Below, in pieces: positions 2,751 through 61,900 of a stretch of 64,000 bases of DNA. The notes below the pieces were generated by a model, which was given only the letters and a program-made list of their open reading frames with translations, made no database searches and was not told where the DNA came from. Positions within the stretch are counted from its first letter, which is position 1; each line of letters opens with the position of its first letter. Position numbers and translations under genes: made by a program. Source of the stretch: Hypanus sabinus (taxonomy: Eukaryota); the NCBI RefSeq assembly GCF_030144855.1, contig NC_082727.1, forward strand, positions 36,952,001-37,016,000, written 5' to 3'.

Positions 2751-5700
2751 ATGAGGTAAAGGATGTTTCCTTGCAGTTTATCTTTATGTACAGATTATTA
2801 TAGAGGAGGTGGTTTACAAAAATTAGTGGATCAAAGTGCAATAACTTTGAAAAACTGAGAGAGGACACATTGGCTAACATGATGGTTGAATGACGAGACT
2901 CGGGTGATCCCTACGTTACTCTGCTGGGGTGGAAACAGTGCAGGGAACTGCAGTGCTTTACTGTTATTTTTGTGATTACCATGAATTAAAAACGCAGTAA
3001 ACACAAGAGTTGCAGCTGATTCCTGACTTCTGAAGAGCCTTCTGTTATGTCTGATCTCCAGATCCAACAGCAAGTTCAAGTGATCATAAATAATCCTCAC
3101 TCACGGCAGGAGAGGCAAGAGGAGTAGGAGAGTAGGAGTCTGATCAAGTCGGTTTACCTGCACTTGTCTTCCTCAAACAGGGGTCTTCGGTGGAATACGA
3201 CTGAGAACAATGACATCATTTGAAAAGATTAGCAGTCAGCGTAATCACTTTACCGCGGATTGATTTCCACGGTAATTTGTAAGGAATGTGGACATTCTCT
3301 CTGTGACGGTGTGCATTTCCTCTGGGAACTCGACTGTCATCCTATATTACAAAGATGTACTGGTTAGGTTTAGTGAGTATTTGGTGTCAGAAACGTGCTG
3401 ACACACTTTCCGACTGTCCGGCACAATTCTTTTTGATCTGATATGATGCCAAACGATGCATTTCATTATATGTTTTGATGTACATGTGACAAAGAAAGTT
3501 CATCTTTAACCTTCAAAGTTTTTAGAAACAGGAGTTGACTCAACTTTGCCATACACTACAGCCATGTAGATTTGAGCACGTTGGAGCCTACGGGCTGCAT
3601 TCAGTACTGAGGTAAGACACCAGAGGAACATGCTACTCTAAACTGTCATAATTTCCAGCCCCTAGCGGCTTTCAGGACAGAATGGAGGAGCTGCATCCAC
3701 GGTGCGGCAAATTCATCTCCTTTGGGAGGAAGCAGGAAGCAGAGTTGATCTCAGACTAGGGTTAAAGGTCGGCACAACATGTTCTATGTTCTGTGCTGGT
3801 CTATTTTCTTCAGAAATGTGCAGCATAATCGGGGACGTTGTTCATGCAATTGTTCTGTGAACTGGTCTGGTAACTCGTAATTTGCCAGACTTCAGTGGGC
3901 TTCACTAAACAGCTTTATCTCACTAATGTTATTGAAGTTCTCAATCTTCTGGACATTGAGTCTGAGGACTGGTGGCTGTCTGGGGAAAAGCACCAATTCT
4001 CTGTACTGAGATCTGGAGTTATGCTCAGGCTGCTGGCAAAAAAACAAAGTCTGCAATAGTGGGAGAGCTCAACGTCTGGTAATAAAACCAAGTCCACCAT
4101 CAGTGTAACAAAGCAACAGATCAGCTGCCTTGGCAGTTCAGGAGACACATTTCCATCTTCATCACATGAATCAATTCTTCATATTGGGTTACTGACCTGA
4201 AACATTCTCCTTCCTCAGATGCAGACTGAAGGCTGAGCATTTCCAGGTTTTCAATGCCATAATTATAAAATAAATTCTTAAAAGGCAGCTTTGATACAAT
4301 TAGTAAATCTGCGTTTTATGGGATTGCAGGTCAGACCTGCATCAAGTGATCTCAGATGGAATTCATGATTATGTTTTTTCTTTCTTGCAGCAACACATCG
4401 AGAGATTTATTGAAAGAGAAGCTCGATCAGCTGCAGTGTCACTTCACATGGAGGCCACAGAAAGAAACTATTGACTTGGACAATCTGATGCTCAGATTGC
4501 AAGATTCTCTGACATTGGGTGTAAAATATCAAGCCGCCTCGTATAACCATCTGGCTTTTGTAAACTGTAGGCAGGGTAATTTTGAAGAAGCCATTGAAAA
4601 TTTAAAGGAAGCTGAAAAGATTCTGAGGGAGAAATACAAAGATGAATTTGAAAGAAGAAGCATCATCACCTATGGAAACTTTGCCTGGGTGCATTACCAC
4701 ATGGGACAACTGACCGAGGCCCAGTCCTATCTCGACAAGCTGGAGATGATCTGTAAACCGCTCAGTGGTGGCCCTCGCTATACAGCAATGATACCCGAGG
4801 TGTACGGGGAGAAGGGACTGTCATTGTTGGGTTCTGCTGCTGAATACTATGAGGAGGCAAAGGAATGCTTTGCAAAGGCTCTGGAGCAAGATCCTGACAA
4901 CACTGAGTGGATAATGGGATATGCGACTGCACTGCTTCGGCTGGAAATATTTTCTGGAAACCCAGAGAGTCGTGATCAGAGTCAGTCAGTGAAGTATTTC
5001 CGACGAGTACTGGAGCTTGATCCAGATGATACTTTGGCCATGGTGCTGTTGGCTCTAAAACTGCAGAGGTTAGGGCAAAATGTGGAAGCAAATGAATTAG
5101 TTGAACAAGCATTGAAGAAAAGGTCTGATCTTCCATATGTGCTTTGCTATGCTGCAATATATTATAGACGAAGAGGTTCTGTGGAGAAAGCAATCGAGCT
5201 AATGAAAAAGGCATTAGAATTAACTCCATACTGTTCCTTCTTACACCACCAACTTGGATTGTGCTACAGAAGTAAGCTGGAATACTGTTGCAGCAGATAT
5301 TGTCGCAATCCTGAATTTCAGCAGAAAGCTGAGTTGATCAATCTGTGCAAGTATCATTTTGAAAAGTCTTTTGAGCACCATCGAAGGTCAGCTATTCAAC
5401 CACAGCTGGACTTTGCACAGATCTGCATAACAAATGGGGAATATTCCAGAGCAGAAGAGACTTACTGTAGATTGGTGGAGTTAGTGGACATTCGTCCAGA
5501 GAATATGCAGCGTATATGTCTGGAAGCTGGATTATTTGAACTGCACCAGAAGAAATTTGAAACAAATGCTGTTCGTCTCTTACTAAAAGGAGCGAAAATT
5601 GAATATAACTCAAGAGAACGAGAAAAATGTCGCAAGAATTTGGAGAAGTGGGCAGATAGGAAACTTAGAATAAATGCACATGACAGCAAGGCTCTTGGTA

Positions 5701-5825
5701 TTAAAGCAATTCTGTATCAGCTGAATGGAATCAAGGATAAAGCGACTGAATACTTTGAGAAAGCCTTGAAGTTTGATCCTGGCAATGAGGAATATGTGAG
5801 TGCTCTTTCTCAATTGCACATCTGA
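2751..5825 (+). CDS. IFIT: IFIT family protein (IFIT5-like), IFIT-A; coding exons 2751-2755 (ATGAG) and 4391-5825, 479 aa
   Basis: IFIT signatures LxQLQCHFTW, TYGNFAWVHYHMG, EKGxSLL, FLHHQLGLCY and TPR repeats. Acceptor tttcttgcag|C at 4390/4391 is in phase with donor ATGAG|GTAAAG at 2755/2756. The ORF-track start MEFMIMFFLSC is intronic. Confidence 0.93.
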
Positions 5826-15278: not shown

Positions 15279-16186
15279 AACCTCGGATCAACTACAACGC
15301 AGAGTCTTGTCATCTTCAGAAGTTTTCTGATGACTCTGCCATAGTTGGATTCATCAGCAAGGGAGATGAGGTTGAGTACAGGGCTACGGTGGGAAACTTT
15401 GTCACATGGTGCGAGCAGAATCATCTGCAGCTTAATGTGAAAAAGACTAAGGAGCTGGTGGTGGACCTGAGGAGGGCTAAGGCACCGGTGACCCCTGTTT
15501 CCATCCAAGGGGTCAGTGTGGACATGGTGGAGGTTTACAGATACCTGGGGATACGAGTGGACAATAAACTGGACTGGTCAAAGAACACTGAAGCTGTCTA
15601 CAAGAATGGTCAGAGCCATCGTTATTTCCTGAGGAGACTGAGGTTGTTTAACATCTGCCGGAGAATGCTGAAGATGTTCTACGAGGCTGTGGTGGCCAGT
15701 GCTATCATGTTTGCTGTTGTGTGCTGTGGCAGCAGGCTGAGGGTAGCAGACAGCAACAGAATCAACAAACTCATTCATAAGGCCAGTGATGTTGTGGGGG
15801 TGGAACTGGACGCTCAGATGGTGGTGTCTGAAAAGAGGATGCTGTCCAAGTTGAATGCCATCTTGGACAACGACTCCCATCCACTTCATAATCTACTGGT
15901 TAGGCACAGGAGTACATTCGGCCAGAGTCTCATTCCACTGAGATGTAACATTGAGCGTCATAGGAAGTCATTCCTACCTGTGGCCATCAAACTTTACAAC
16001 TCCTCCCTCGGAGTGTCAGACACCCTGAGCCAATAGGCTGGTCCTGGACTTATTTTTTCCACTTGGCATGATTAACTTATTATTATTTATGGTTTTATAT
16101 CGCAATATTTCTTCACTATTCATGGTGGTACGGCTGTAACGAAACCCAATTTCCTTCAGGATCAATAAAGTATGTCTGTCTGTCTG
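15279..16186 (+). mobile_element. 5'-truncated Rex1/Babar-type LINE (RT C-terminus), present only in duplicon A
   Basis: LQKFSDDSAIVG..WCEQNHLQLNVKKTKELVVD..YLG..LDWSKNT; AATAAA plus (TCTG)n tail; empty site ctttttacttatcc at ~34778-34791 in duplicon B. Confidence 0.85.
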
Positions 16187-18445: not shown

Positions 18446-19694
18446 CTGCTTGACCTCACAAACAAGTCTCCGGATCCAGAAGGTTCTGCATCAGCACACA
18501 CTGTAGTCCCTGGTCCCCAAAGGCAACAAAACTAAGCAGTACTGTGCCATTGTGCATGCATGCAGTGGAATGTTATGTGTAGAGTTATTTGAGGACAAGT
18601 ATAATTTATTCCAGGGTAAATATATTTAATTTCATAACTTTGACAAATATTGTGCTATGCAATGGAATTTCTAGGCTCATGAACGATAGAGACAAGCCAT
18701 TTTTTTTCAGAACTGCTCATTGTCGCACATTAGTTACACTCATGAGGTCACTGTAGGCCTTACTGCACTGTGTTGAGGTACTATGGACTGACTCTGTCAC
18801 TTCACTACACCGTCCTCTAGGGGTCGCTACACTACCCTCTGGGGTGATGGGGTGTGTGGGGTTTAGTGTAGAACAACCTTGTTCATCCAGTCCAGATTTT
18901 AAAGTAGAGATTTCCAAGAAACCAGGGGCTTTTGCTGACTGAGAACATCACTGCTACCAATGTCTCTGTCTTCCTTCCACAGAACTCCGGGAAGGGGAAA
19001 AGCAGGGAAACACAAATAGTTAAAAGACAATCTGAGATGCTGCCAGGTATGAAGAGTGGACAGATAGAAGATCAGCCAATCAGGTTGGGTCTGATGGGCC
19101 AAGTTATTTATTACTGTTGCAATCACAGCATGCTTTTGTACGGTAATGGGATACTGGGAGCTCTGTATCAGCCTGCATTGAAAGTAAAGCAGAGTTATTA
19201 TTTCAGGCCAATAAGCTTTCAGTGCAAACAATTATCTCCCAGTTAAACAGATTACAGCCCAGTCACTTAGTTCAACAACTTCAGACAAAAATGCATATCC
19301 AGTACTGTCTGTTGTTATTGAGACATCGAGTGTCTGCAACACTTTCTGGACCATTTTGGATGCTCAGCAGTTTCACGATTGGTGAGAGGGAGATGTCAGA
19401 CAATCTCAGTGTCACACAGTCAAAAGTAGGCATTTGGTCCATCATTGCTGCCACGTGATTGGCTGATCGGATATTGACATCAACGAGCAGGTGTTCAGGT
19501 GTACAACTGGACACAGAGGTAATAATTCAAATATGAAATAAAAGTAACTTCCATTTCGGGTCAATATATGTACACATTAAAATTTATTCATGTGTTTAAA
19601 GTTTGGTGGACTCCTAGCTCTGTTACAGGTAATGACGTGAAGAAAAATGATCATGTATGAAGTGACCAATTTCATGAACTTTCTTCACTTGCAG

Positions 19695-20122
19695 AGACAC
19701 ACAAAGAGATTTGTTGAAAGAGAAGCTCGATCAGCTTCACTGTCACTTCACGTGGGGCCCTCAGAAGGGAACCATTGACTTGGAAGATGTGATGTACATA
19801 TTGCAAGATGCTAGAAATCTCAGTGTGAAACATCAAGCCATGTGTCACAACCCAACTCACTTTAGTAAATTGACTGCCGGGAAACAATAAACAAGCCATT
19901 CAGAACTTCAATGAAACTCTCACTATCCTGCATTTTGCCAGAAAGCAAAGTTGTTTAATCAATGAAAATATCGCTTTGGAAAGGCATTTGAGCAATGTCC
20001 AATATCAGGTATTGAACGCAACTGGATTTAGCAGTTATAAGTGTAAGAAATGGAGAGTATTCCAAAGTGAAAGAGATGTACGGTAATTTTTTGAAATTAG
20101 ATGATATTCATCCAGTAAATCT
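19695..20122 (+). pseudogene. IFIT: IFIT pseudogene (duplicon-A paralogue of IFIT-C)
   Basis: Acceptor cacttgcag then RDLLKEKLDQLHCHFTWGPQKGTIDLED; frameshifts and stops; ~700-bp internal deletion near 19910; truncated at ~20122; core promoter motifs and exon 1 deleted. Confidence 0.9.
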
Positions 20123-20617
20123 TTCCTAAATGTTCAATAAAGCTGAAATTTGTAAATATACTTTCTTTACAATATACACAGTGTACGATCTGTTATTTCT
20201 TGCCGAAGGCTATGTGCATGGGGACAGTATTTACACAGTATTCACTCAGATTGGGGTCCGGGTGGTCGATACATCCTGGCTCATTTTCCACATGGAAATG
20301 CAGAATGAAGGCCTGAGCTCAACCCACCAGGAAGTTTTAGTTTTAGGGACTATTCCACCAGATGAACTATAGGGATCGAACTCTTCCACCAGAGATAAAT
20401 CAGAGGAGGAGGAAGAGAGGCCATTAAGTGGCTGTAGTGGATGTAGCTGCTATGAAGACACAGTGGACATGCTTTCTGTGCCAGCAAATAGGGCACCTGG
20501 CAAGGGAGTGCCAATTAGACATAGATTGGTAAAGGTGATGTCACAGTATGTTACAGCTATGGCCTACCAGGGCACTGTTAGATAATGTGTCCGACCAAAC
20601 AGAGAAAAGTGTGAAAA

Positions 20618-27310: not shown

Positions 27311-30300
27311 ATGAGGTAAAGGACGTTTCCTTGCAGTTTATCTTTATGTACAGATTATAAAAAAAAAGATGGTTTACGAAAGTTAGTGGATCATCGTACA
27401 ATAACTTTGAAAAACTGAGAGTGGACACATTGGCTAACATGATGATTGAATGACGAGACTGTAGGGTGATCCCTACGTTACTCTGCTGGGGTGGAAACAG
27501 TGCAGGGAACTGCAGTGCTTTACTGTTATTTTTGTTATTAACATGAATTAAAACGGCTGTAAACACAAGATTTGCATCTGATTCCTGACTTCTTAAGAGC
27601 CTTCTGTACTGTATGATCGCTAGATCCAAGAGCAAGTTGAAGTGATCAAAAATAATCCTCACTCACGGCAGGAGAGGCAAGAGGAGTAGGAGAGTAGGAG
27701 TCTGATGAAGTCGGTTTATCTGCACTTGTCTTCCTCAAACAGGGGTCTTCGGTGGAATACAACTGAGAACACTGACACCATTTGAAAAACTTAGTAGTCA
27801 GTGTAATCACTTTACCACGGATTGATTTCCACGGTAATTTGTAAGGAATGTGGACATTCTCTCTGTGACTGTGTGTGTTTCCTCTGGGTACTCGACTGTC
27901 ATCCTATATTCCAATGATATACGGGTTAGGGTGAGTGAGTATTTGGTGTCAGAAATGTGCTGACACACTTGCCGACTGTCCTACACAATTCTTTTTGATC
28001 TGATATGATGCCAAATGATGCATTTCACTGTATGTTTTGATGTACATGTGACAAACAAAGTTCATCTTTAATCTTCAAAGTTTTAAGAAGTAGGAGTTGA
28101 CTCAACTCTGCCATGCACTACAACCGCGTAGATTTGAGCACGTTGGAGCCTACGGGCTGCATTCAGTACTGAGGTAATACACCAGAGGAACATGCTACTC
28201 TAAACTGTCATAATTTCCAGCCCCTAGCGGCTTTCAGGACAGAATGGAGGAGCTGCATCCACGGTGCGGCAAATTCATCTCCTTTGGGAGGAAGCAGTAA
28301 GCAGAGTTGATCTCAGACTAGGGTTAAAGGTCGGCACAACATGTTCTATGTTCGATGCTGGTCTATGTTCTTTCAGAAGTGTGCAGCAGGATCAGGGGAT
28401 GTTGCTCATGCAATTGTTCTGTGAACTGGTCTGGTAACTCGTAAATTGCCAGACTTCAGTGGACTTCACAATACAGCTTTATCTCACTAATGTTATTGAA
28501 GTTCTCAATCTTCTAGACATTGAGTCTGAGTACTGGTGGCTGTCTGGGGAAAAGCACCACTTCTCTGTACCGAGATCTGGGGCTACACTCAGTCTGCTGG
28601 CAAAAAAACGAAAGTCTGCAATAGTGGGAGAGCTCAACGTCTGGTAATAAAACCAAGTCCACCATCAGTGTAACAAAGCAACAGATCAGCTGCCTTGGCT
28701 GTTCAGGAGACACATTTCCATCTTCATCACATGAATCAATTCTTCATATTGGGTTACTGATCTGAAACATTCTCCTTCCTCAGATGCAGACTGAATGCTG
28801 AGCATTTGCAGGTTTTCAATGCCATAATTATAAAATAAATCTTTAAAAGGCAGCTTTGATACAGTTAGTAAATCTGCTTTTTATGGGATTGCAGGTCAGA
28901 CCTGCTCCAAGTGATGTGAGATGGAATTCATGATTATGTTTTTTCTCTCTTGCAGCAACACTCCGGGAGATTTATTGAAAGAGAAGCTCGATCAGCTGCA
29001 GTGTCACTTCACATGGAGGCCACAGAAGGAAACTATTGACTTGGACGATCTGATGTTCAAATTGCAATATTCTGTGACATTGGGTGTAAAATATCAGGCT
29101 GCATCATACAATCATCTTGCTTTTGTAAACTGTCTGCAGGGTAATTTTGAAGAAGCCATTGAAAACTTAAAGGAAGCTGAAAAGATTCTGATGGAGAACC
29201 ACAAAGATGAATATGAAAGAAGAAGCATCATCACCTATGGAAACTTTGCCTGGGTGCATTACCACATGGGACAGCTGACCGAGGCCCAGTCCTATCTCGA
29301 CAAGCTGGAGATGATCTGTAAACCGCTCAGTGATGGCCCTCGCTATACAGCAATGATACCCGAGGTGTACGGGGAGAAGGGATGGTCATTGTTGGGTTCT
29401 GCTGCTGAATACTATGAGGAGGCAAAGGAATGCTTTGCAAAGGCTCTGGAGCAAGATCCTGAAAACACTGAGTCGATAATGGGATATGCAACCGCACTTT
29501 CTCGTCTGGAATCAATGTCTGGAACCCCAGAGAGTCGTGATCAGAGTCAGTCAGTGAAGCATTTCCGAAGAGTACTGGAACTTGATCCAGATGATGCTGT
29601 GGCCATGGTGCTGTTGGCTCTAAAACTGCAGAGGTTAGGGCAAAATGAGGAAGCAAATGAATTAGTTGAACAAGCATTGCAGAAGACATCTGATTTTCCA
29701 TATGTGCTTCGCTATTCTGCAAAATATTATAGACAAAGGGGATTTGTGGAGAGGGCAATTGAGTTCCTGAAAAAAGCATTAGAATTAACTCCACATTCTG
29801 GTTTCTTACACTACCAACTTGGATTGTGCTACAGAAGTCAGCTGAAATACATTCACAGCAGATATCCTCGCAGTCCTGAATTTCAGCAGAAAGCTGAGTT
29901 GTTCAATCTATGCAAATATCACTTTAAAAAGTCTTTTGAGCACCGTCAAAGGTCAGCTATTAAACCACAACTGGTCTTTGCAGACATCTGCATAACAAGT
30001 GGGGATTATTCCAGAGCAGAGGAGACTTACCGTAGATTGGTGGAGTTAGTGGACATTCGTCCAGAGAATATGCAGAGCATTTGTCTGGAAGCTGGGTTAT
30101 TTGAACTGCACCAGAAAAAATCTGAAACAAATGCTGTTCGCCTCTTCCTGAAAGGAGTGAAAATTGAATATAACTCAGAAGAACGGGAAAAATGTCGCAC
30201 AAATTTGGAGAAGTGGGCAGATAGGAAACTTATAGTTAATGCAAATGACAGCAATGCTCTTGGTGTCAAAGCATTTCTGTATCAGCTGGATGGGATCAAG

Positions 30301-30390
30301 GATAAAGCGACTGAATACTTTGAGAAGGCCTTGGAGTTTGATCCTGCCAATGAGGAATATGTGAGTGCTCTTTCTCAATTACACATCTGA
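27311..30390 (+). CDS. IFIT: IFIT family protein IFIT-B; coding exons 27311-27315 and 28956-30390, 479 aa
   Basis: Intact ORF, ~85% amino-acid identity to IFIT-A by manual count; canonical splice sites; retains EKGW and PYVLRYSAK. Confidence 0.94.
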
Positions 30391-41579: not shown

Positions 41580-44500
41580 ATGAGGTACAGAACACTGTAA
41601 ATCTCCTGTATTTAAACTTTATTTTTTAACCATTGCATGGAAGTTTAATTACAAAAGTGTGCCGAATGTATTGCTGTAACTGTACCTGGAGCACAGTATT
41701 GGTGTTGTGCATTCATAGGAACATCATTAAAGGCAGATCAGGCTGCTTGTGTCGAAAGTAAAGCAGAGTTATTATTTCAGGCCAATAAGCTTTCATTCCA
41801 ATAAATTATCTCCCAGTTAAACAGATTACAGCCCAGTCACTTGTTTCAATCACTTCAAACAAATAAACATATCCAGTACTTTCTTTTCTTATTTAGACAT
41901 CTAGTATCTGCAACACTTTCTGTACCATTTTGGATGCTCAGCAGTACCAAGACTGGTGAGAGTCAGACATCAGACAATCTCAGCACCACACCGACAAAAG
42001 TAGGCCTTTGGCCCATCATATTCATGTTCACCATCAAGTATCCATTTATACTCATCCCATCTACCAACAACTTTTCTGCAGCTTTCTACGCCTCAATGAT
42101 TCTAATGTTAATTGTTGTGAAGTTACTGTCTTCCCCACTCATGTTCAGCAATGTGTTCAGCTTAGAAACACCATCTGTTGATGGACTTTCAAAGCTTTTT
42201 ATCCCTTGCTCTACATCTACACCAGATAGTTATACATGACTCTGACTTGGGATATATTTTCTATAATCTACTGTGTCTGTGTCCATCATGATTTTGTATT
42301 CTTCTTTTTTCTTCAAGGAAAACCAACCTAGCTTATCAAGTTTCTCCTCAGACATCTTCATGCATGGACATTATACACTATATAATTCAAGCATCTCCAC
42401 TTCACCTGGCACAAGCAGAACTACTTGGCAGCAAAACATTTTAACTCCGATTCCCATTCCAGGTTCCACTGTACCAATCCATGATCTCCTCTTGGGCCAA
42501 AACAAGGCCATCCTTAGAGTAGACGAGCAACATCATACATTCCATCTGGGTAGCCTCCAATCTGACGGCATGAATATTGATTTCTCCTTCTGGTAAACAA
42601 ATCCCCCCCAACCTCTAGTCCCCATCTTTTACGTCTTCTCATGTGCCTATTACTTCCCTCAGGGTTCCCTGCTCCTTTCCTTTCTCCTATGGCTTACACT
42701 CCTCTCAGATTTCCTCTTCTCTAGCCCTTTGCCTTTCCCACCCACCTAGCTTCACCTATCACCTTCCAGTTAGCCTCCTTCCTGCACCCCCCCCCCTAAC
42801 TTTTTATTCTGGTACCTTCTCTCTTATCAGTTCTGGAGAAGAGGTCCTCAGCCCGAAACGTTCACTATCTATTCATTTCTATAGATGCTGCTTGACCAGC
42901 TGAGTTCCTCCAGAATTTTGTGTGTGCTTATTTGAATTACCAGAATCTGCAGATTTTCTCATGTTTATTATGCACTCAGTGCCCATGTTGTTAGGTATCT
43001 CTTGTGGCAGCTGAGTAAATGTTCCTGCCTTTCAGCTGCTGCTGCCTATCGAACTCAAGCTTCCAGGTGTTGTGCTTATAGAGATGCTCTTCAGCAGACC
43101 ACTCTTATTTGATTCATGATTGTTTGAGTTACTGTTGCTTTCCTGTTAGCTTGAACTAGTCTGGTCATTCTTCTCTGACCATTCTGATAAACAAGAACAC
43201 CTGATTTTTGTTTTTGTGGGTTTTTTTTTTGCATTGAGACTTGCATGTGAATATCCCAGGAGATCAGCAGTTTCTGAGATACTCAAACCACGCCATCTGG
43301 CACCAACAATCATTCCACGCTCAAAGTCATTACCCATTCTATTGTTTGATTGGAACAACGACTGAACCTCTTGACCATGTCTGTATGCTTTTATACATTG
43401 AGTTGCTGACATATGAGTTGCTATTTAGATATTGGCATTAACAAGCAGGTGTACAGATGTACATAATAAAGTGTACAACTGCATTTATATGGTAATAATG
43501 CAAATATAAAATAAAAGTACCTTCCATTTGGGCTCAATATACTTACAACTTAAAATTCATTCATGTGTTGTTTAAAGTTTGGAGGACTCTCGGCTTTGTT
43601 ACAAGAAATGATGTGAAAAAATGATCATGTATGAAGTGATGAATTTCGTGAATTTTCTTCACTTGCAGCAACACTCAAAGAGATTTGTTGAAAGAGAATC
43701 TCGATCAGCTTCAGTGTCACTTCACGTGGGGCCCTCAGAAGGGAACCATTGACTTGGAAGATATGATGTACAGATTGCAAGATGCTATAAATCTTGGTGT
43801 GAAGTATCAAGCCACATGTCACAACCAACTCGCTTTCATAAATTGTCTGCAGGGTAAGAATAAAGAAGCCATTCAGAACTTAAATGCAGCTGAAGAAATT
43901 TTGAAGGATAACCACAATGATGAATTTGAAAGAAGCATCATCATCACCTATGGAAACTTTGCCTGGGTGCATTACCACATGGGACAACTGACCGAGGCCC
44001 AGTCCTATCTCGACAAGCTGGAGATGATCTGTAAACCGCTCAGTGATGGCCCTCGCTATACAGCAATGATACCCGAGGTGTACGGGGAGAAGGGATGGTC
44101 ATTAATAAGATCTGCAGCTCTATTTTATGAGGAGGCAAAGGAATGCTTTGAGAAGGCTCTGGAGGAAGATCCTGATAATACTGAGTGGATTATGGGGTAT
44201 GCAACTGCTCTGTATCGTCTGGAATTATTTTCTGGTACCCCAGAAAATCTGAAACAAAATCAGTCAGTGAAGCATCTGAGACGGGTGTTGGATCTTGATC
44301 CAAACGACTCCATGGCAATGGTGCTGTTGGCTCTAAAACTGAAACAGCTCAAGCAAAAAGAGACAGCAACTAAATTAGTTGAACAAGCATTGCAAAAAAC
44401 TCCTGATTTACCATATGTGCTTCGTTATGCAGCAAAATTTTATAGATTAGAAGAAGATGTGGAGAAAGCCATTAGGCTGTTGAAGAAAGCATTAGAAATA

Positions 44501-45139
44501 ACTCCACTCTCTGCATTTTTGCACGATCAAATTGCTATGTGCTATAGAATTAAATTAGATGAACTGATCAACAATCCTCGTAGCAGAAACCCTCGCAATC
44601 CTGCATTTCACCAGAAAGCAAAGTTGTTCGAACAATGCATGTATCACTTTGGAAAGGCATTTCAGCACCGTCCTAAATCTGCTATTAAACCACAACTGGA
44701 TTTTGCAGGTGTCTGTGTAAGAAATGGAGAGTATTCCAAAGCTAAGGAGATCTACAGTAATCTTTTGAAATTAGATGATATCCGTCCAGAAAATTTGCAG
44801 AGAATATGTCTACATGCTGGGAATTTTGAACTATACCAGAGAAGGTGTGAATCAAATGCCATCAGCCTATTCCTTAAAGGACTGAAAGTTCAATATGACT
44901 CAAATGAACGAAAAAAGTGTCACGATAAAGTGGAGAAGTGGACAGACAAAAAACTTTGCAAGGATCCACATGATAGCAAGGCTCTTGGTATGAAAGGGCT
45001 ACTGTATCAGCTGAATGGGAACAAGGCTAAAGCTATTGAATACTTTGAGAAGGCCTTGGAGTTTGACCATGAGAACGAGGAATATCTGAGTGCTCTTTAT
45101 GAATTACGTCTTTCCATTGAGGAACATAACAACCCTTGA
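41580..45139 (+). CDS. IFIT: IFIT family protein IFIT-C; coding exons 41580-41584 and 43669-45139, 491 aa
   Basis: Acceptor cacttgcag|C in phase with ATGAG|GT; LDQLQCHFTW, GNFAWVHYHMG, PYVLRYAAKFYR (as in mammalian IFIT5). Confidence 0.93.
42970..43475 (-). mobile_element. Tc1-like transposon remnant in the IFIT-C intron
   Basis: DFERGMIVGAR..GLSISETADLLG is a Tc1 N-terminal HTH region. Confidence 0.75.
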
Positions 45140-53282: not shown

Positions 53283-56200
53283 TGATGCACCACCAAATAA
53301 CTCTCGGAGACGTGAGGTGAGATATAGGCTTTTATTGGCTGGAAGAAAGAACAAGCAGCAAGTGACCACCACACTGCATCCTGGAGACTGAGGCTGGGGC
53401 GGTGTCCCCAATCGCCTCTATACCGGGGTCCATGGGAGGAGCCACAGGAGCAGTCAGCGGGGGGGGGGGGGGGGGGGGGGGCGTGTCCAGGTATATGTAG
53501 TTCACCACATTCAACCCCCTGCCTTTGTATTTAAAAGAGAGAAGTTTCTTACAAGTATATTTACAGGTTAAGTCTATCAGGTGGTGGAATCTGTCGCTGC
53601 GATCTACGTAGCACCGGCTGTGATTGCACAGGTGCCGGTGGTGATTGCACCGGAGATGATGGTTGTGCTGGTTCCGGCCTAACTGAAGGTGTCAGCCCAC
53701 TAGGCATCAGTGATCCCTCATGGGTGTGTGAGGGACCTGGTATATGCGTGTGCGAGGCGCCCGGTATGGGAGTGTCGTGAGGAGTCTGTGTAGGGCTCGG
53801 TGTGCGCGGTGTCACCTCGGGTACAGGGTTCATAGTTACCGGAGAGCCTTCAGGGTAGTGGTCTGCTGCTCCTGCAGGCACCAGGTTGCGGATGGAGACC
53901 GTGTCCTCCCGCCCATCAGGTAAGACCACGTAGGCATACTGGGGGTTCACATGTAGTAGGTGAACCCTCTCGACCAGTGGGTAGTATTTATTGCTCCTCA
54001 CATGTTTCCGGAGCAGCACTGGCCCTGGGGACGTCAGCCAAGCTGGTAGGGTCGTCCCAGTGGCAGAATTCCTGGGAAAAAAGAATAGGCGCTCGTGAGG
54101 GGTGGCATTGGTGGATGTACATAACAGGGAATGGATGGAGTGGAGTGCCTCGGGGAGGACCTCTTGCCATCGAGAGACCGGCAACCGCTTTGACTTAAGG
54201 GCTAAAAGTGTGGCCTTCCACACTGTGGCATTCTCCCTCTCCACCTGTCCATTTCCCTGGGGATTATAGCTCGTGGTCCGACTAGTAGCAATGCCCCTAG
54301 CCAGCAGGTACTGGCGCAGCTCGTCACTCATAGCAGGGATATCCGAACAGAGTGAAGAGCTGGTGCAGGGCTTTTATGACGGACGTGGCAGTGGTGTTGG
54401 GGCAGGGGATGGCAAAGGGGAACCGCGAGTACTCGTCGATAATGTTGAGAAAGTAGACATTGCGGTCGGTGGAGGGAAGGGGGCCCTTAAAGTCAACACT
54501 CAGTCGCTCAAAGGGGCGGGTGGCCTTGATAAGTTGTGCCTTGTCAGGACAGTAGAAGTGCAGTTTGCACTCAGCGCAGACTTGGCAGTCCCTGGTCATC
54601 ATCCTGATGTCTTCAAAGGAGTAAGGCAGGTTCCGGGCTTTCATGAAATGGTAAAATCGGGTGAGCCCCGGGTGGAAAAGATCTGCCTGGAGGACATATA
54701 GCTGGTCGAGCTGTGCGCTGGCACACGCTCCCTGGGATAGGGGCATCAGGGGGCTCATTGAGCCTTCCAGGCCGGTACAGGATACCATAGTTGTAGGTGG
54801 AGAGTTCTGTTCTCCACTGCAAAATTTTATCATTTTTGATTTTGCCCCGCTGTTGGTTGCTGAACATGAACGCAACTGAGCGTTGGTCGGACAGCAAGGT
54901 GAACCTTTTGCCGGCAAGATAGTGCCTCCAGTGCCTAATGGCTTCCACTATGGCCTGGGCTTATTTCTCCACCGCGGAGTGCCGAATTTCAGGGCCTTGA
55001 AGGGTACAAGAGAAGAAGGCCTGCCTGCCTGATTGAGGGTAGCAACCAGTGCAAAGTCACTCTCTACTTGGAAGGGAGTGGTCTTGTCCATCGCATGCAT
55101 CGTTGCTTTGGCAATGTCCCCTTTAATGCAGCTGAAGGCTGCGCGGGCCTCGGCAGAGAGGGGAAATGTGGTGGACTTGACCAGGGGGCGGGCCTTGTCT
55201 GCGTAATGAGGGACCCATTGGGCGTAAGAGGAAAAGAAGCCCAGGCACCGTCTGAGGGCTCTGAGGGTTGTGGGAAAAGAGAGTTCTAACAGGGGGTGCA
55301 CATGGTCTGGATCAGGACCAATGACCCCGTTCTCCATGACATACCCAAGGATAGTGAGTCAGGTGGTTCCAAACACTCACGTCCCCGTTATAAGTAAGGT
55401 TCAGGACTTTGGCCACTTGGAAAAATCATTGGAGGTTGGTGTCGTGATCCGGCCAGTCGTGACCACAGCTGGTGATGTTATCCAGATAGGGAAATGTGGC
55501 CTTCAGTTGGCACTGGTCCACCATCCAGTCCATTTCCCTCTGGAAGACAGAGACACCATTCGTGACACCAAATGGGACGCGCAGGAAGTGATAGAGCCTG
55601 CCGCCCGCCTCGAAAGCGATGTAGGGTCGGTCCTCTGGGCGGATGGGGAGCTGGTGGTAGGCGGATTTCAGATCTATGGTCGAGTACACTTTGTACTGAG
55701 CTAACTGGTTGACCATATCCGCGATGCGGGGTAGGGGGTACGCGTCAAGCTGCGTGAACCTATTGATGGTCTGGCTATAGTCCACGACCATCCTATTTTT
55801 CTGCCTGGTCCGAACAACAACCACCTGGGCCCTCCAAGGACTTGTGCTTGGCTCAATGATCCCCTCCCTGAGCAGCCACTGCACCTCTGACTGAATGAAG
55901 GCCCTGTCCCCCGCGCTGTACCTCCTGCTTTTAGTTGCCACAGGTTTACAGTCAGGGGTCAGGTTGGTGAACAGCGGTGGGGGAGGGATCTTGAGGGTGG
56001 AGAGGCTGCAAGTGGTGTCAGTAGCTCAGCTGTTGGCATGGTGCTGGGTGGGATGTGTGGTTCAGTGTGTGTGTGTGTGTGGTCAGTAGCGGGGTATATA
56101 GCGGTCCCACAAAACTGAGGATTCCTGACAGTGAGTGGTGGGAGGGGCCCGTCATATGCCATAGTCACACTTTCAAGGTGGCTGTGGAAGTCCAGCCCCA

Positions 56201-57641
56201 ATAGCACAGGCATGCACAGTTGAGGCATGACCAGTAACGCAAAGTTCCGATATTCTGTGCCCTGCACCACCAAAGTTGCTACACAACCCACCCGGATGTC
56301 TGTGGAATACGACCCAGAAGCCATGGTGATCCTCTGGGTTACCGATCGTGTCACGAGTCCGCAGCGTTGCACTGTGTCCGGGTCAATAAAACTCTCAGTG
56401 CTGCCCATGTCAAACAGGCAGCTAGTCCTGTGCCCCTCCAGCAGGATGTCCATCATTGACCTTGCAAGCTGGTGTGGGGCGCTTTGGTCGAGGGTTACAG
56501 AGGCCAGAGATGCATTGCCGTCTTGGTGCCCGGTAAGCACCCGTGGGTCGGGGGCAGGGCGAGGTGGCGCTGACAAAGATGGCCACCCCCATGTCTCGCA
56601 CGCAGCGCAGTCCGACCCCACTTGTGGTTCAGACATACAGACCTTGGCGAAATGGCCCTTCTTTCCGCAGCTGGAGCAGGTAGCTTCTCATGCTGGGCAG
56701 TGTTTTCGGGGGTGCTTTTCGAGTCCGCAGAAGTAACACTACGCGGACTTGTGAATGGCAGCAGCTGTGGTCGGTTTCAGGGAGTTTGTGGATTCGTGAC
56801 TGGCAGCAGCTGAGGTCGATTCGCTCGCGGGTGGTGGGGTCTGCAGCATCCACAGAACCGGCGGGGGATCGCACTGCTGGACAGTATCAGCGTTGTGCAG
56901 AGCAGCCTCCAGCATGTTGGCCATCTCAATCGCCGAGCGTAAGGTAAGATCGGCATTTTCCAGCAGCCGCTGGCGCACGTACACTGACCTGATCCCCGTA
57001 ACAAAGGCGTCTCGTACCAGGAGCTCCGCATGCTGTTCTGCAGTCGCAGGCCCGCACAAGTGTCTGTAGGGCTCGGACAAACTTCCCGCTCGACTCACCA
57101 GGCTGCTGCCGCCGCGTCGCTAAGCGATGTCTTGCGTAGACGGTGTTCACCGGCCACAGGTACTGCCTTTTGAGGGCGTCCAGTGCCCCTTCGTAGGTCG
57201 GCAGCTTCCTGATAAGGGAGAATACTTTCGGGCTGACCCTGGAAAGGAGGATTTTGTGCATTGTGGCAGGCTCAGTCACAGGAATCACTTCCAGGTATGG
57301 TTGGAAGCATGCAAGCCAGAGTTCAAAGGCAACAGCTGCTTCGGGAGCTTGAGGGTCCAAGTCCAATTTTTCCAGATGTAAAATACTCTCCATGTTTTAA
57401 AACTTCCAGCCAATAAAATTGATGCACCATCAATAACTCTTGGAGACGCGAGGCGAGATATAGGCTTTTATTGGCTGGAAGAAAGCACAAGCAGCAAGTG
57501 ACCACCACACAACATCCTGGAGAATGAGGAAGGGTCTGTGCCTCCAATCACCTTTATACCGGGGTCCGTGAGAGGAACCACAGGAGCAGTCAGCAGGGGG
57601 GGCGGGGGGCGTATCCAGACAGGTATATGTAGCTCACCACA
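53283..57641 (-). mobile_element. Near full-length Gypsy family 3 element (gag-pro-RT-RH-IN), antisense in the IFIT-D intron
   Basis: LTRs of ~225 bp at 53283-53509 and 57420-57641 (TG..CA); gag ATG at 57393; knuckle CSSCGKKGHFAKVC; PR LFDMGS; RT VVDYS..IDLKSAYHQ..PFG..YLDN; IN SVDFKGP, IDEYSRF, NGQVER; PPT agggggttgaa; multiple frameshifts. Confidence 0.92.
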
Positions 57642-58945: not shown

Positions 58946-61900
58946 GATAATCTTCTATAGCTGAGCAGTTTCTAAATGTTGAACAGTTCCTATTAGTTCT
59001 GAAGATTAGCTCCATTCCACTGGGAATTTTGTTGGAGGCGACTTAGAACAAAGCTAGGACATAGATGGTGGCTTGTGAGCAATACTAGGATAAATAGACA
59101 CAACAGCCTCTTGGGGGCCAACCAAAGGTGTTTTTTTTTCTCTTTATTAAATGTGCTTTTTTATCATACATCCATACAGGACTCCAATAACAACCAGTAG
59201 AGCAGGTCTACTGCAACAGTGAGCTGTTTATTGTTTGGAGTAGCCATCCAGCAGTTTAGAGGAGGAGAGGCCAGTCACCAGGCCACGAGAGGAGAGTCAG
59301 CCCATCAGGCCTCAGGGGGAGGTGACCGGGGTGCAGGCTGTGTTGCTGCCTGCTACTCGAAGGCACCGGAGCTGGTGTGCGAATGCAACGTGTAGAGGAA
59401 CTGTGAGTGACTGTATTGGACGTTTCTTTTGCGATCCCGAGGCATGGCTGGCCATCGATTGCCGCGGGCTGTTTCCCTTGATTGGTGGTGAGACAGGAAG
59501 CTAGGCAGCAGTGTCAGCTCAGTTGCAACAATGACTAGAACTCAAGCAGCAGGCTTGCCTGCTGCACAGTCCAGGTGAGGAGCGGACATTGGAAGCGGTG
59601 TAATGTGGCGTCCATGCTCCGTTGGGCTGTGGCTTCTCCCGTCAGTGCTGCCCTCCATTGTTGGATCAGTAGAGTTACAAGCAGGATGCTGGGAATCATC
59701 AATTTGTGGGACTTATCGCTCGGGGTCTTGGACTAAAAATGTGTTTTCTTGCGTGACTATGTTCTTGTTTTTCTCTCTCATTATTTTGAATGCATGTGTA
59801 CTGTAGGTTTTTGCACCTTGGCCTCAGATGAATGCTGTCTCATTCAGCTGTATCCATGAATGGTTTGAATAATAATTCATTTTGATTTGTTTGATAGAAG
59901 TGCTGAGGCAATTACACAAAACCTGCTTAAAACAAGCTTTCACTGGAATTGTCAGTGACGCAGATGCTTTGGTTCAGATCATGGCCTGTAGACATCATGA
60001 TGCTTATCCAATTAACACACACACACATGCGCGCACACACACTTTTCCACACTGATCTCTTTTCTTATTCTCATTAACACATTGAGTTCAACAATATCAG
60101 AACAGAAACCCATGCAACACGCCTGATCTGTTTATGCTTTGTACATTTGGTATTGAATAGCCAACCTTCCTTACATGAACTAAGATGAATTTTCAAGAAT
60201 TTTGTCCTCTTTCAGCAACTCACAGAGAGAATTAATGAAAGAGAAGCTCGATCAGCTTCAGTGTCACTTCATGTGGAGCCCCCAGAAAGAAAATGTTGAC
60301 TTGGAAGATGTGATGTACAGATTGCAAGATTCTATCCAACTGAATTTGAAATATAAGGCAAGGTCCTACAACCAACTCGCTTTTGTAAACTGCCTGCAGG
60401 GCAACTATGAAGAAGCAATTCAAAATTTAAAGGAAGCTGAAAAGATTCTGAGGGAGGAGTACAAAGATGAATTTGAAAGAAGAAGTATCATCACCTATGG
60501 AAACTTTGCCTGGGTGCATTACCACATGGGACAACTGACCGAGGCCTAGTCCTATCTTGACAAGCTGGAGATGATCTGTAAACCGCTCAGTGATGGCCCT
60601 CGCTATACAGCAATGATACCCGAGGTGTACGGGGAGAAGGGATGGTCTTTGCTAAGGTCAGCTAGTCAATACTATGAGGAGGCAAAGGCATGTTTTGAGA
60701 AGGCACTGGAGGAAGATCCTGATAATACAGAATGGATGATGGGATGTGCTACTGTTTTGTTTCGCCTGGAATCATTTGCTGGTACACCAGAAAATCGTGA
60801 ACGGAGTCAGTCAATGAAACATCTGCATCGTGTACTGGAGCTTGATCCCGATGACTCATTGGCCATGGTTCTGTTGGCTCTAAAACTTCAGGAGCTGAAG
60901 AAAAAGAAAGAAGCAAATGAATTAGTTGAACAAGCATTGCAGAAAACCTCTGATTATCCAAAAGTGCTTCGCAACGCTGCAAAATTTTACCGAAAGGAAA
61001 AGGATGTGGAAAAAGCAATCATGTTGTTGAAGACAGCATTAGAAATTTCCCCACATTCTAGCGTCCTGCATGACCAATTGGGCATGTGTTACAGAATCAA
61101 ACTACTTGAATTAATTGCCAATCCTCTGAGCAAGGATCCTCAGAACCCAGAATTCCAACAAAAAGCAGATTTGTTCAATCAATGCAAATATCACTTTGGA
61201 AAGGCATTTGAGCATCGTCCAAAGACAGCTGTTAAATCACAACTGGATTTTGCTGACATCTGTCGAAGAAATGAAGAGTATTCCAAAGCAGAGGAGATCT
61301 ATAGTAATCTTTTGAAATTAGTTGATATTCGCCCAGAAAATATACAGAGAATATGCTTAGAGGCTGGTTTATTTCAACTGTACCAGAGGAAGTCAGAATT
61401 CAATGGCATCAAGTTGTTACAGAAAGCCCTGAAGATTGAAACTCAGTCAAAGCTCTGGAAAAAGGGTTGTGAGCATTTGGAGAAATGGGCAGACAGGAAA
61501 CTTTGTAGGAATCCACATGACAGCATGGCCCTTGGTGCCAAAGGGCTACTGCATCAACTGGGCCACAACAAGTCCAAAGCTATTGAATGTTATGAAAAGG
61601 CCTTGGAGTTTGATCCTGGCAATGAAGAATATCTCAGCGCTCTCTGTGAGCTACACCTTTCCTTAGAGGACCGTAATGATATTTGAAAGGTGAAATGATT
61701 TCACTGGATGTGAGGACAGACTTGTAGGATTTCTTTACTAAATATATATCATTTTTAAATGAGAGTTTTACTTGTGAATATGTTATTTTAAAAGACAACC
61801 TTACTGTAACTACACCTAACCCTTGTGTTATTTCAAAGATAGTGACACTAACTGGTCTTGTGAACAAACTGAGTTTAGTTGCATTTCTTTGGACATTCAA

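Follow-up and report, generated by a model that had tools for sequence, protein, structure and literature searches.

A 64-kb stretch of the genome of the Atlantic stingray, Hypanus sabinus, called the window here, contains zero N and carries four copies of exon 2 of an IFIT gene (A, B, C and D), in tandem on the + strand. Within this exon, a block of 156 nucleotides is almost the same in all four copies, while the rest of the exon is diverged. It is very probable that the block is an island of concerted evolution, produced by short-tract interlocus gene conversion among tandem IFIT paralogues. We favor this reading because the tract is bounded, silent sites included, because trees of the block and of its flanks conflict, and because derived silent states are common to copies which are not orthologous. 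The exons and their blocks are listed below, with the splice junction marked by a slash.

4391 to 5825, + strand: exon 2 of IFIT copy A, acceptor ..ttgcag/C, encoding all but the first 1-2 residues of the protein P0002 (479 aa)
4662 to 4817, + strand: homogenised block of copy A, with one private non-synonymous change, GAT>GGT
28956 to 30390, + strand: exon 2 of IFIT copy B, the C-terminal part of the protein P0008
29227 to 29382, + strand: homogenised block of copy B, with one private silent change, CAA>CAG
43669 to 45139, + strand: exon 2 of IFIT copy C, the protein P0040 (491 aa), whose best solved match is human IFIT5 (E 1e-104)
43940 to 44095, + strand: homogenised block of copy C, exactly the four-copy consensus
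60216 to 61686, + strand: exon 2 of IFIT copy D, its frame interrupted by a single stop at 60547
60487 to 60642, + strand: homogenised block of copy D, with two private changes, CAG>TAG and CTC>CTT
60547 to 60549, + strand: premature TAG in the block of copy D (CAG>TAG), the remaining D frame being intact

The match of copy C to the human IFIT5 chains extends over residues 1-485, and IFIT1 follows with E 4e-101. AlphaFold predicts 26 helices for copy C with a mean pLDDT (predicted local distance difference test) of 87.8. The copies thus have the length (~470-490 aa), the full-length homology and the all-helical tetratricopeptide repeat (TPR) architecture of an IFIT. The closest database proteins are IFIT1-like and IFIT5-like proteins of Hypanus sabinus itself, followed by dozens from stingrays, mantas, sawfish, skates and sharks. 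The splice acceptors directly precede SNT codons, and the annotated proteins begin MSNT.

The alignment of the four blocks is gapless, and 152 of its 156 columns are invariant. An earlier note on this DNA had placed the blocks 1, 1, 0 and 2 nucleotides from their consensus, synonymous sites included, and realignment returned exactly these numbers; the private change of copy A is a G at block column 107 (Asp>Gly). The note had also described the genes as diverged outside the block, which agrees with what was found. Elsewhere in exon 2, 60-nucleotide windows show 62-88% identity among A/B, C and D, with a minimum of 42-53% around an indel at 5242-5290; over 4642-4817 the figure is 95-100%, and it falls within a few codons on either side. 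The suggested comparison of synonymous divergence (dS) in block and flanks shows a clear trough at the block rather than a flank-like value: by the Nei-Gojobori method, dS between A/B, C and D is 0-0.065 in the block and 0.51-1.14 in the flanks, and for the close pair A/B it drops from ~0.2 in the flanks to 0.03 in the block. Fisher tests on synonymous counts in block and flank gave p-values of 1e-8 to 3e-9. The tract covers codons 93-144 of ~490 with identity at background level on both sides, and so the paralogues are far closer within a bounded tract than in its flanks, silent sites included, as in interlocus gene conversion. The note's description of the block as GC-rich relative to its flanks (~53%, six CpGs) also stands, with GC of 0.51-0.53, 5-6 CpG, and a GC content at third codon positions (GC3) of 0.65-0.69 against 0.35-0.48 in the flanks of the stingray copies.

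In copy C only, the 20 codons upstream of the block (43880-43939, ..NAAEEILKDNHNDEFERSI) show a burst of amino-acid changes. The other genes and species examined keep the conserved version of this stretch, which makes the conserved island of most copies ~45-60 nt longer on the 5' side. Similarity among A-D at 4552-4661 was considered as a separate, longer tract and rejected, because most species have the same states there and it is copy C that departs from them.

The A/B, C and D lineages are older than the split between stingray and sawfish (Pristis), because each has its own Pristis orthologue, both in flank trees and in non-coding DNA. The DNA compared comprised four genes of Pristis pectinata, two of Amblyraja, one of Leucoraja, two of whale shark and one shark contig from a metagenome; Hemitrygon akajei and Mobula hypostoma were included at the protein level only. 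In the tree of flank DNA, C groups with sawfish P0035 (99/99), A and B group with sawfish P0030 (99/99), and D and sawfish P0039 form a pair (98/97) within a clade that also contains a skate copy (100/100). Monophyly of stingray A-D is rejected by the flanks, with a difference in log likelihood (delta lnL) of 169 and an approximately unbiased (AU) test value of 8e-28. The introns and 3' flanks align only to the orthologous sawfish locus, that is A/B to the locus of P0030 (L001), C to that of P0035 (L006) and D to that of P0039 (L008), and this orthologous non-coding DNA has 23-29% mismatch between stingray and sawfish. A flank tree of 124 proteins contains further deep stingray clades, one of them nested among shark genes.

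The block, in contrast to the flanks, groups by species. Its DNA tree unites stingray A-D (99/98) and rejects the orthologue groupings (AU 0.0007, 0.0045, 0.018 and 0.00015), so that block and flank trees across rays and sharks, a comparison the earlier note had proposed, are in significant conflict of the kind that gene conversion leaves. At block positions 69, 104, 135 and 138 there is a fixed difference between stingray (4/4 copies) and sawfish (4/4 copies): TAT vs TAC, AGT vs ACT, CCC vs CCT and GAG vs GAA, three of the four being silent. The sawfish state at these sites is also found in the skates, and at three of them in both sharks; at the fourth, one shark copy has the stingray state. 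As the sawfish state recurs in skates and in one shark or more, the four stingray states are derived. The same four derived changes occur in three separate orthologue lineages of one species, which means that derived, lineage-specific substitutions are common to non-orthologous copies, and zero block sites show the orthologue pattern.

A permutation test like that of GENECONV found nothing in the block when it was run within the four stingray copies alone or the four sawfish copies alone. In this form the test is blind, because it uses only sites which vary within the set and a fully homogenised tract has almost none. When it was repeated on the 859 sites that vary among 13 sequences of 5 species, the block was recovered. 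Six of the seven fragments at p <= 0.002 are paralogue pairs of stingray or sawfish in the block, so the within-species pairs are picked out there, in line with what the earlier note had proposed. One cross-species pair also appears, stingray A with sawfish P0073 (p <= 0.0005).

Other elasmobranchs show the same behavior. Among the sawfish paralogues, dS is 0-0.10 in the block and 0.43-0.57 in the flanks. The whale shark genes P0071 and P0082 differ at 2/40 third positions in the block and at 60/284 in the flank; they have common silent states which are absent from the other shark, while their flanks place P0071 nearer to that other shark. Across the 124 proteins, diagnostic block residues sort almost perfectly by taxon, and on the flank tree the same residues need 10-13 changes. 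Block residue 35, for example, is Ser in all 59 non-Gly myliobatiform rows, Thr in sawfish, skates and squalomorph sharks, and Pro in galeomorph sharks. At equal flank identity, block identity is 0.94 within the same species, 0.88-0.91 between different batoid orders and 0.77-0.81 between shark and batoid. In Hemitrygon, 7/18 copies, spread over different clades, carry a Gln16His change where their Hypanus orthologues keep Gln, and this looks like a variant part-way through spreading by conversion. Concerted evolution is thus seen in the DNA of stingray, sawfish and whale shark, and a peptide-level signal is present in ~120 IFIT proteins from ~20 elasmobranch species.

The proposed mechanism is that non-reciprocal copying repeatedly overwrites ~156 nt of exon 2, while the rest of the gene diverges along its orthologue lineage. 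The data show that such replacement has recurred since stingray and sawfish separated, and that other lineages have undergone it independently. Purifying selection on the peptide may keep the block alike enough for homologous pairing, and each conversion would reset the block to identity and so enable the next one. Flanks which are 20-35% diverged should halt the extension of a heteroduplex, and converted flanks may be counter-selected; together with flank divergence, this would give the shared boundaries. There are two silent private changes over the 4 x 33 silent sites of the stingray blocks, and the per-lineage dS to sawfish is ~0.22. On these numbers, the age of the last homogenisation may be, very roughly, 5-10% of the time since stingray and sawfish split.

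Several observations weigh against conversion, most of all against conversion as the sole account. Between stingray and sawfish, the block differs at 1/22 four-fold sites (up to 3/21 for D; 0.05-0.14), whereas the orthologue flanks differ at 0.26-0.29 and the orthologous non-coding DNA at 0.23-0.29. Under conversion alone, tract and flanks of orthologues should be equally diverged between species, as reported for the mammalian IFIT1/IFIT1B pair discussed below; here the tract is the less diverged of the two. Homogenisation is weak in the skate Amblyraja, where block dS is 0.29 (P0037 vs P0061). With 2000 shuffles, the p-values of the permutation test are at their lowest attainable level, and correction for 78 pairs leaves them only borderline. 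DNA was examined for 4 of roughly 18 stingray copies, and no conversion event was directly observed.

The uneven divergence points to added constraint rather than to an absence of conversion. The deficit needs selection or a lower mutation rate, because neutral copies in two species would be at least 2*mu*T apart whatever conversion does. It recurs at comparable third positions between stingray and sawfish (3-6/41 in the block vs 0.21-0.24) and at four-fold sites between skate and sawfish (2/22-23 in the block vs 0.26-0.31). At ~2-4-fold, from few sites and one to three independent contrasts with p of about 0.01-0.03 each, the deficit is suggestive of extra constraint on top of conversion. In sliding windows, a trough in the proportion of synonymous differences (pS) and a peak in GC3 appear at the block in the cross-species, stingray-paralogue and sawfish-paralogue series alike. 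Adjacent windows with an equally low proportion of non-synonymous differences (pN) have a normal pS of 0.41-0.49, so protein conservation does not by itself explain the low pS of the block.

It is possible, though we think it clearly the less likely case, that the block has a second function at the nucleotide level, either as an RNA or DNA element or through selection on codon choice that affects how the hinge is translated or folded, and such a function would more plausibly act atop conversion than alone. The silent divergence between species, lower than in flanks and orthologous non-coding DNA, speaks for it, as do 10 of ~17 A/T-ending block codons which are constant from sharks to rays and a 94-nt stretch over which stingray A matches the deep sawfish paralogue P0073 exactly. 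As a sole account it fails on the four derived changes found in three orthologue lineages and on the tree conflict. As an added layer it faces the modest statistics, a close skate pair with no deficit (0.10 vs 0.08) and two sharks with little of one (7/34 vs 76/299). The search for an RNA fold, covariation, an Rfam family or an antisense open reading frame (ORF) also produced no element. The predicted fold of the block is weaker than that of shuffled sequences (z +1.5; 191/200 shuffles fold as well), covariation was seen in 0/33 predicted pairs across 13 sequences, and an Rfam search of the block gave no match at E <= 1. A pattern scan found no motif like an interferon-stimulated response element (ISRE) inside the block. 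An antisense ORF does lie over the 3' part of the block (4762-5229), and was treated as chance since it occurs only in A/B and has no family match. The overlapping element which the earlier note offered as its alternative may therefore be partly right with respect to the added constraint, while it does not suffice alone and the conserved RNA structure that the note suggested looking for did not appear.

The earlier note had also qualified its recurrent conversion as possibly GC-biased. The conversion itself is supported by the tree conflict, the derived silent states and the permutation test, while the data do not establish the GC bias. In both stingray and sawfish, the block has a GC3 of 0.65-0.79, compared with ~0.35-0.45 elsewhere. 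Polarised changes specific to stingray comprise two from weak (A/T) to strong (G/C) pairing, one from strong to weak and one between strong bases, and the A/T-ending codons of the block are as invariant as the G/C-ending ones from sharks to rays. GC-biased gene conversion was rejected as the cause of the slowness between species: codons with weak endings are conserved, and by a back-of-envelope estimate a bias which lifts GC3 from 0.39 to 0.68 would alter the overall rate by only ~10%.

A second GC3-rich island (0.62) is present at the start of exon 2, at 4407-4470 and the homologous positions of B, C and D, around the motif LLKEKLDQLQCHFTW. This island has low silent divergence between species, yet it is not homogenised among the stingray copies. 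It lies 20-70 nt behind the splice acceptor, and splicing signals are a plausible cause which cannot be extended to the block.

Two further explanations would do away with conversion altogether. That purifying selection on the peptide and the slow substitution rate of elasmobranchs suffice has some appeal, as the block peptide is 40-52/52 identical in most of 120 elasmobranch IFITs at ~60% whole-protein identity, and 18/52 of its columns are invariant vs 39/439. Silent sites escape protein constraint, however: four-fold sites in orthologue flanks differ by 26-29% and dS in paralogue flanks is 0.5-1.1, while dS in the block is 0-0.06, and species-specific silent states which are common to paralogues cannot come from purifying selection on a peptide. 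We regard this explanation as very improbable. Slightly less credible still is that the identity is a collapse in assembly or polishing, or that A-D are very recent duplicates with fast flanks. Short reads inside the block are indeed not assignable to a locus, and public collapsed contigs give one high-depth block contig. The same block with the same boundaries is nevertheless present in independent assemblies of sawfish, two skates and whale shark and in the metagenome shark contig, which excludes the collapse that the earlier note had named as a possible refutation; the copies retain private changes (copy C itself being the consensus), and flanks and non-coding DNA have separate sawfish orthologues.

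Public runs were also used to look at the stop in copy D. The collapsed contigs carry the family-majority C at 60547 and 60558, and the TAG of D is unseen there; since these runs are fragmented contigs in which rare variants are dropped, they neither confirm nor refute the stop. In the public runs of three organisms, the block is on a single contig with a depth several-fold above that of contigs with D-specific flank. K-mer depth of these contigs is not readable as copy number, and the high depth fits many copies sharing the block. The stop makes D a very recent pseudogene or a null allele, or else it is an error. Conversion could in principle mend a lesion of this kind, or carry it into other copies.

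The block is the most conserved peptide of the elasmobranch IFITs, judged from the 120 proteins returned by the search. Its 52 residues are mostly 40-52/52 identical to the stingray version, against ~60-70% for whole proteins, with 34-38/52 in four orectolobiform sharks. In an alignment of 40 proteins, invariant columns number 18/52 in the block and 39/439 elsewhere. Of the stingray IFIT proteins in the hit list, 16/17 are at least 50/52 identical to the consensus peptide. In Hypanus sabinus P0113, whose sawfish orthologue is P0056, the second half of the block is clearly diverged (43/52). The P0113 lineage apparently escaped homogenisation, and may serve as an internal control for a block without conversion.

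Block residues 93-144 of copy C correspond to IFIT5 residues 94-145. In the AlphaFold model of copy C, the block covers the second half of helix 5, helix 6, a 13-residue loop and the first half of helix 7. As modelled, the block encodes the junction of subdomains I and II and the hinge leading into helices 7-9. The earlier note had described a constant N-terminal TPR cassette; a constant module is indeed found, located at this junction rather than making up the whole N-terminal cassette. The first residue after the block aligns with the Trp that follows ..EKG in human IFIT5 and IFIT1, presumably Trp147 of IFIT1, a cap contact. At this position (4818-4820) copy A has Leu (CTG) in place of the Trp found in B, C and D and in every other species examined. 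Helices 7-9 clamp the 5' end of RNA in IFIT1, and they are domain-swapped in the IFIT2-IFIT3 heterodimer (PMC12570964).

We put forward, as a tentative and on balance unlikely idea, that the paralogues co-assemble through the subdomain I/II hinge encoded by the block, with conversion keeping the interface matched, or that the 156 nt double as a nucleic-acid element. If the paralogues do co-assemble, conversion would be favored for matching a shared interface across a family of at least 20 members. If the nucleic-acid element exists, it would account for the 2-4-fold deficit of silent change between species, which conversion could not produce.

IFITs detect the 5' ends of viral RNA at the front line of defence, and arms races drive their evolution. 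The closest known system is the recurrent conversion between mammalian IFIT1 and IFIT1B, in which ~950 nt, the 5' two-thirds of the gene, are homogenised between two paralogues, with a recurrent breakpoint at the pivot (Daugherty et al. 2016, eLife 5:e14228; PMC4887208). In that system orthologues are evenly diverged along the gene, and the authors propose a common function, or a role in oligomerisation, for the homogenised part (PMC4887208). The elasmobranch case resembles it in the gene family, in the tandem arrangement of the paralogues, in homogenisation of part of a coding exon within species and in a recurrent shared boundary; in both, trees of the converted part follow species, and those of the unconverted remainder follow orthology. 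It differs in that the elasmobranch tract is ~156 nt, internal and at the subdomain I/II junction, instead of the 5' two-thirds ending at the II/III pivot, and the stingray tract has neither that extent nor that breakpoint. Unlike the mammalian tract, which involves two paralogues, the elasmobranch tract is common to essentially the whole family, recurs across lineages and is under-diverged at silent sites between species. A known process, the conversion of mammalian IFIT1, is here extended to a much shorter tract and to a whole gene family.

Mosaic concerted evolution is known in interferon-alpha, MHC (major histocompatibility complex), KIR, opsin and globin genes, as short non-allelic tracts bounded by diverged or protected sequence. 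As in these mosaics, a conserved segment is homogenised beside diversifying segments. Synonymous constraint elements in coding exons reflect overlapping RNA or DNA functions, and the IFIT block is like them in that the silent rate is locally lowered within an exon and has been kept low over long times. It is unlike them in that no overlapping function, structure or motif was identified in the block and the deficit is statistically modest. We know of no described case of conversion in cartilaginous-fish IFITs, and a literature search on concerted evolution of IFITs in sharks and cartilaginous fishes found no description.

If conversion is the right reading, the IFIT family of sharks and rays evolves as a mosaic, in which a common hinge module is kept by copy-to-copy correction and the RNA-contacting remainder diversifies. 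Whole-gene trees of cartilaginous-fish IFITs would be distorted by this module, and orthology is better called from the flanks. The module apparently must stay alike across paralogues, which hints that they share a partner or form hetero-oligomers. Elasmobranch IFITs, numerous in copies and species and slow in their clocks, offer a natural system for measuring the tract length, rate and bias of non-allelic conversion, which has hardly been studied in this vertebrate lineage. They also suit the question of why the silent sites of the block are slower than neutral.

Some further observations concern IFIT genes in the other genomes. The sawfish orthologue of copy C lies in at least 5 identical tandem units with a period of 4151 bp (L006 6695-20599 and L007; CM019866.1, ~33.17-33.20 Mb), which are either a very recent amplification or an assembly artefact. 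In whale shark (Rhincodon typus NW_025969406.1, L003 918-1881), pieces of a broken IFIT pseudogene lie 9 kb upstream of P0071 and include a decayed block copy which is 76-86% identical. A complete Mustelus-like IFIT gene is present on the 3.4-kb contig Ga0262470_10359 (L004, JGI metagenome 3300026616), which is host DNA in a microbiome sample.

The remaining IFIT features of the window are a pseudogene fragment and candidate ends of exon 1, again with a slash at the junction; all of these candidates come from a pattern search only, and that of copy A is tentative.

19681 to 20126, + strand: IFIT pseudogene fragment, matching copy A residues 8-74 and 319-385, with the block region missing
2751 to 2755, + strand: candidate exon-1 end of copy A, ATGAG/GTR, within a stretch (2570-2950) that can be aligned with the beginning of the sawfish orthologue
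27311 (B), 41580 (C) and 52022 (D): analogous candidate exon-1 ends, ATGAG/GTR

Between copies C and D there is a retroelement relic, a run of minus-strand ORFs at 53561-57393, which includes an aspartyl protease domain of retroviral type at 55959-56636 (Pfam gag-asp_proteas, E 2e-10). An N-terminal motif of ALKBH8 (Pfam PF09004) is common in reverse-transcriptase ORFs of the LINE (long interspersed nuclear element) type. The ORF at 15389-16036 has a short match to this motif (E 4e-8) and is probably a repeat fragment.

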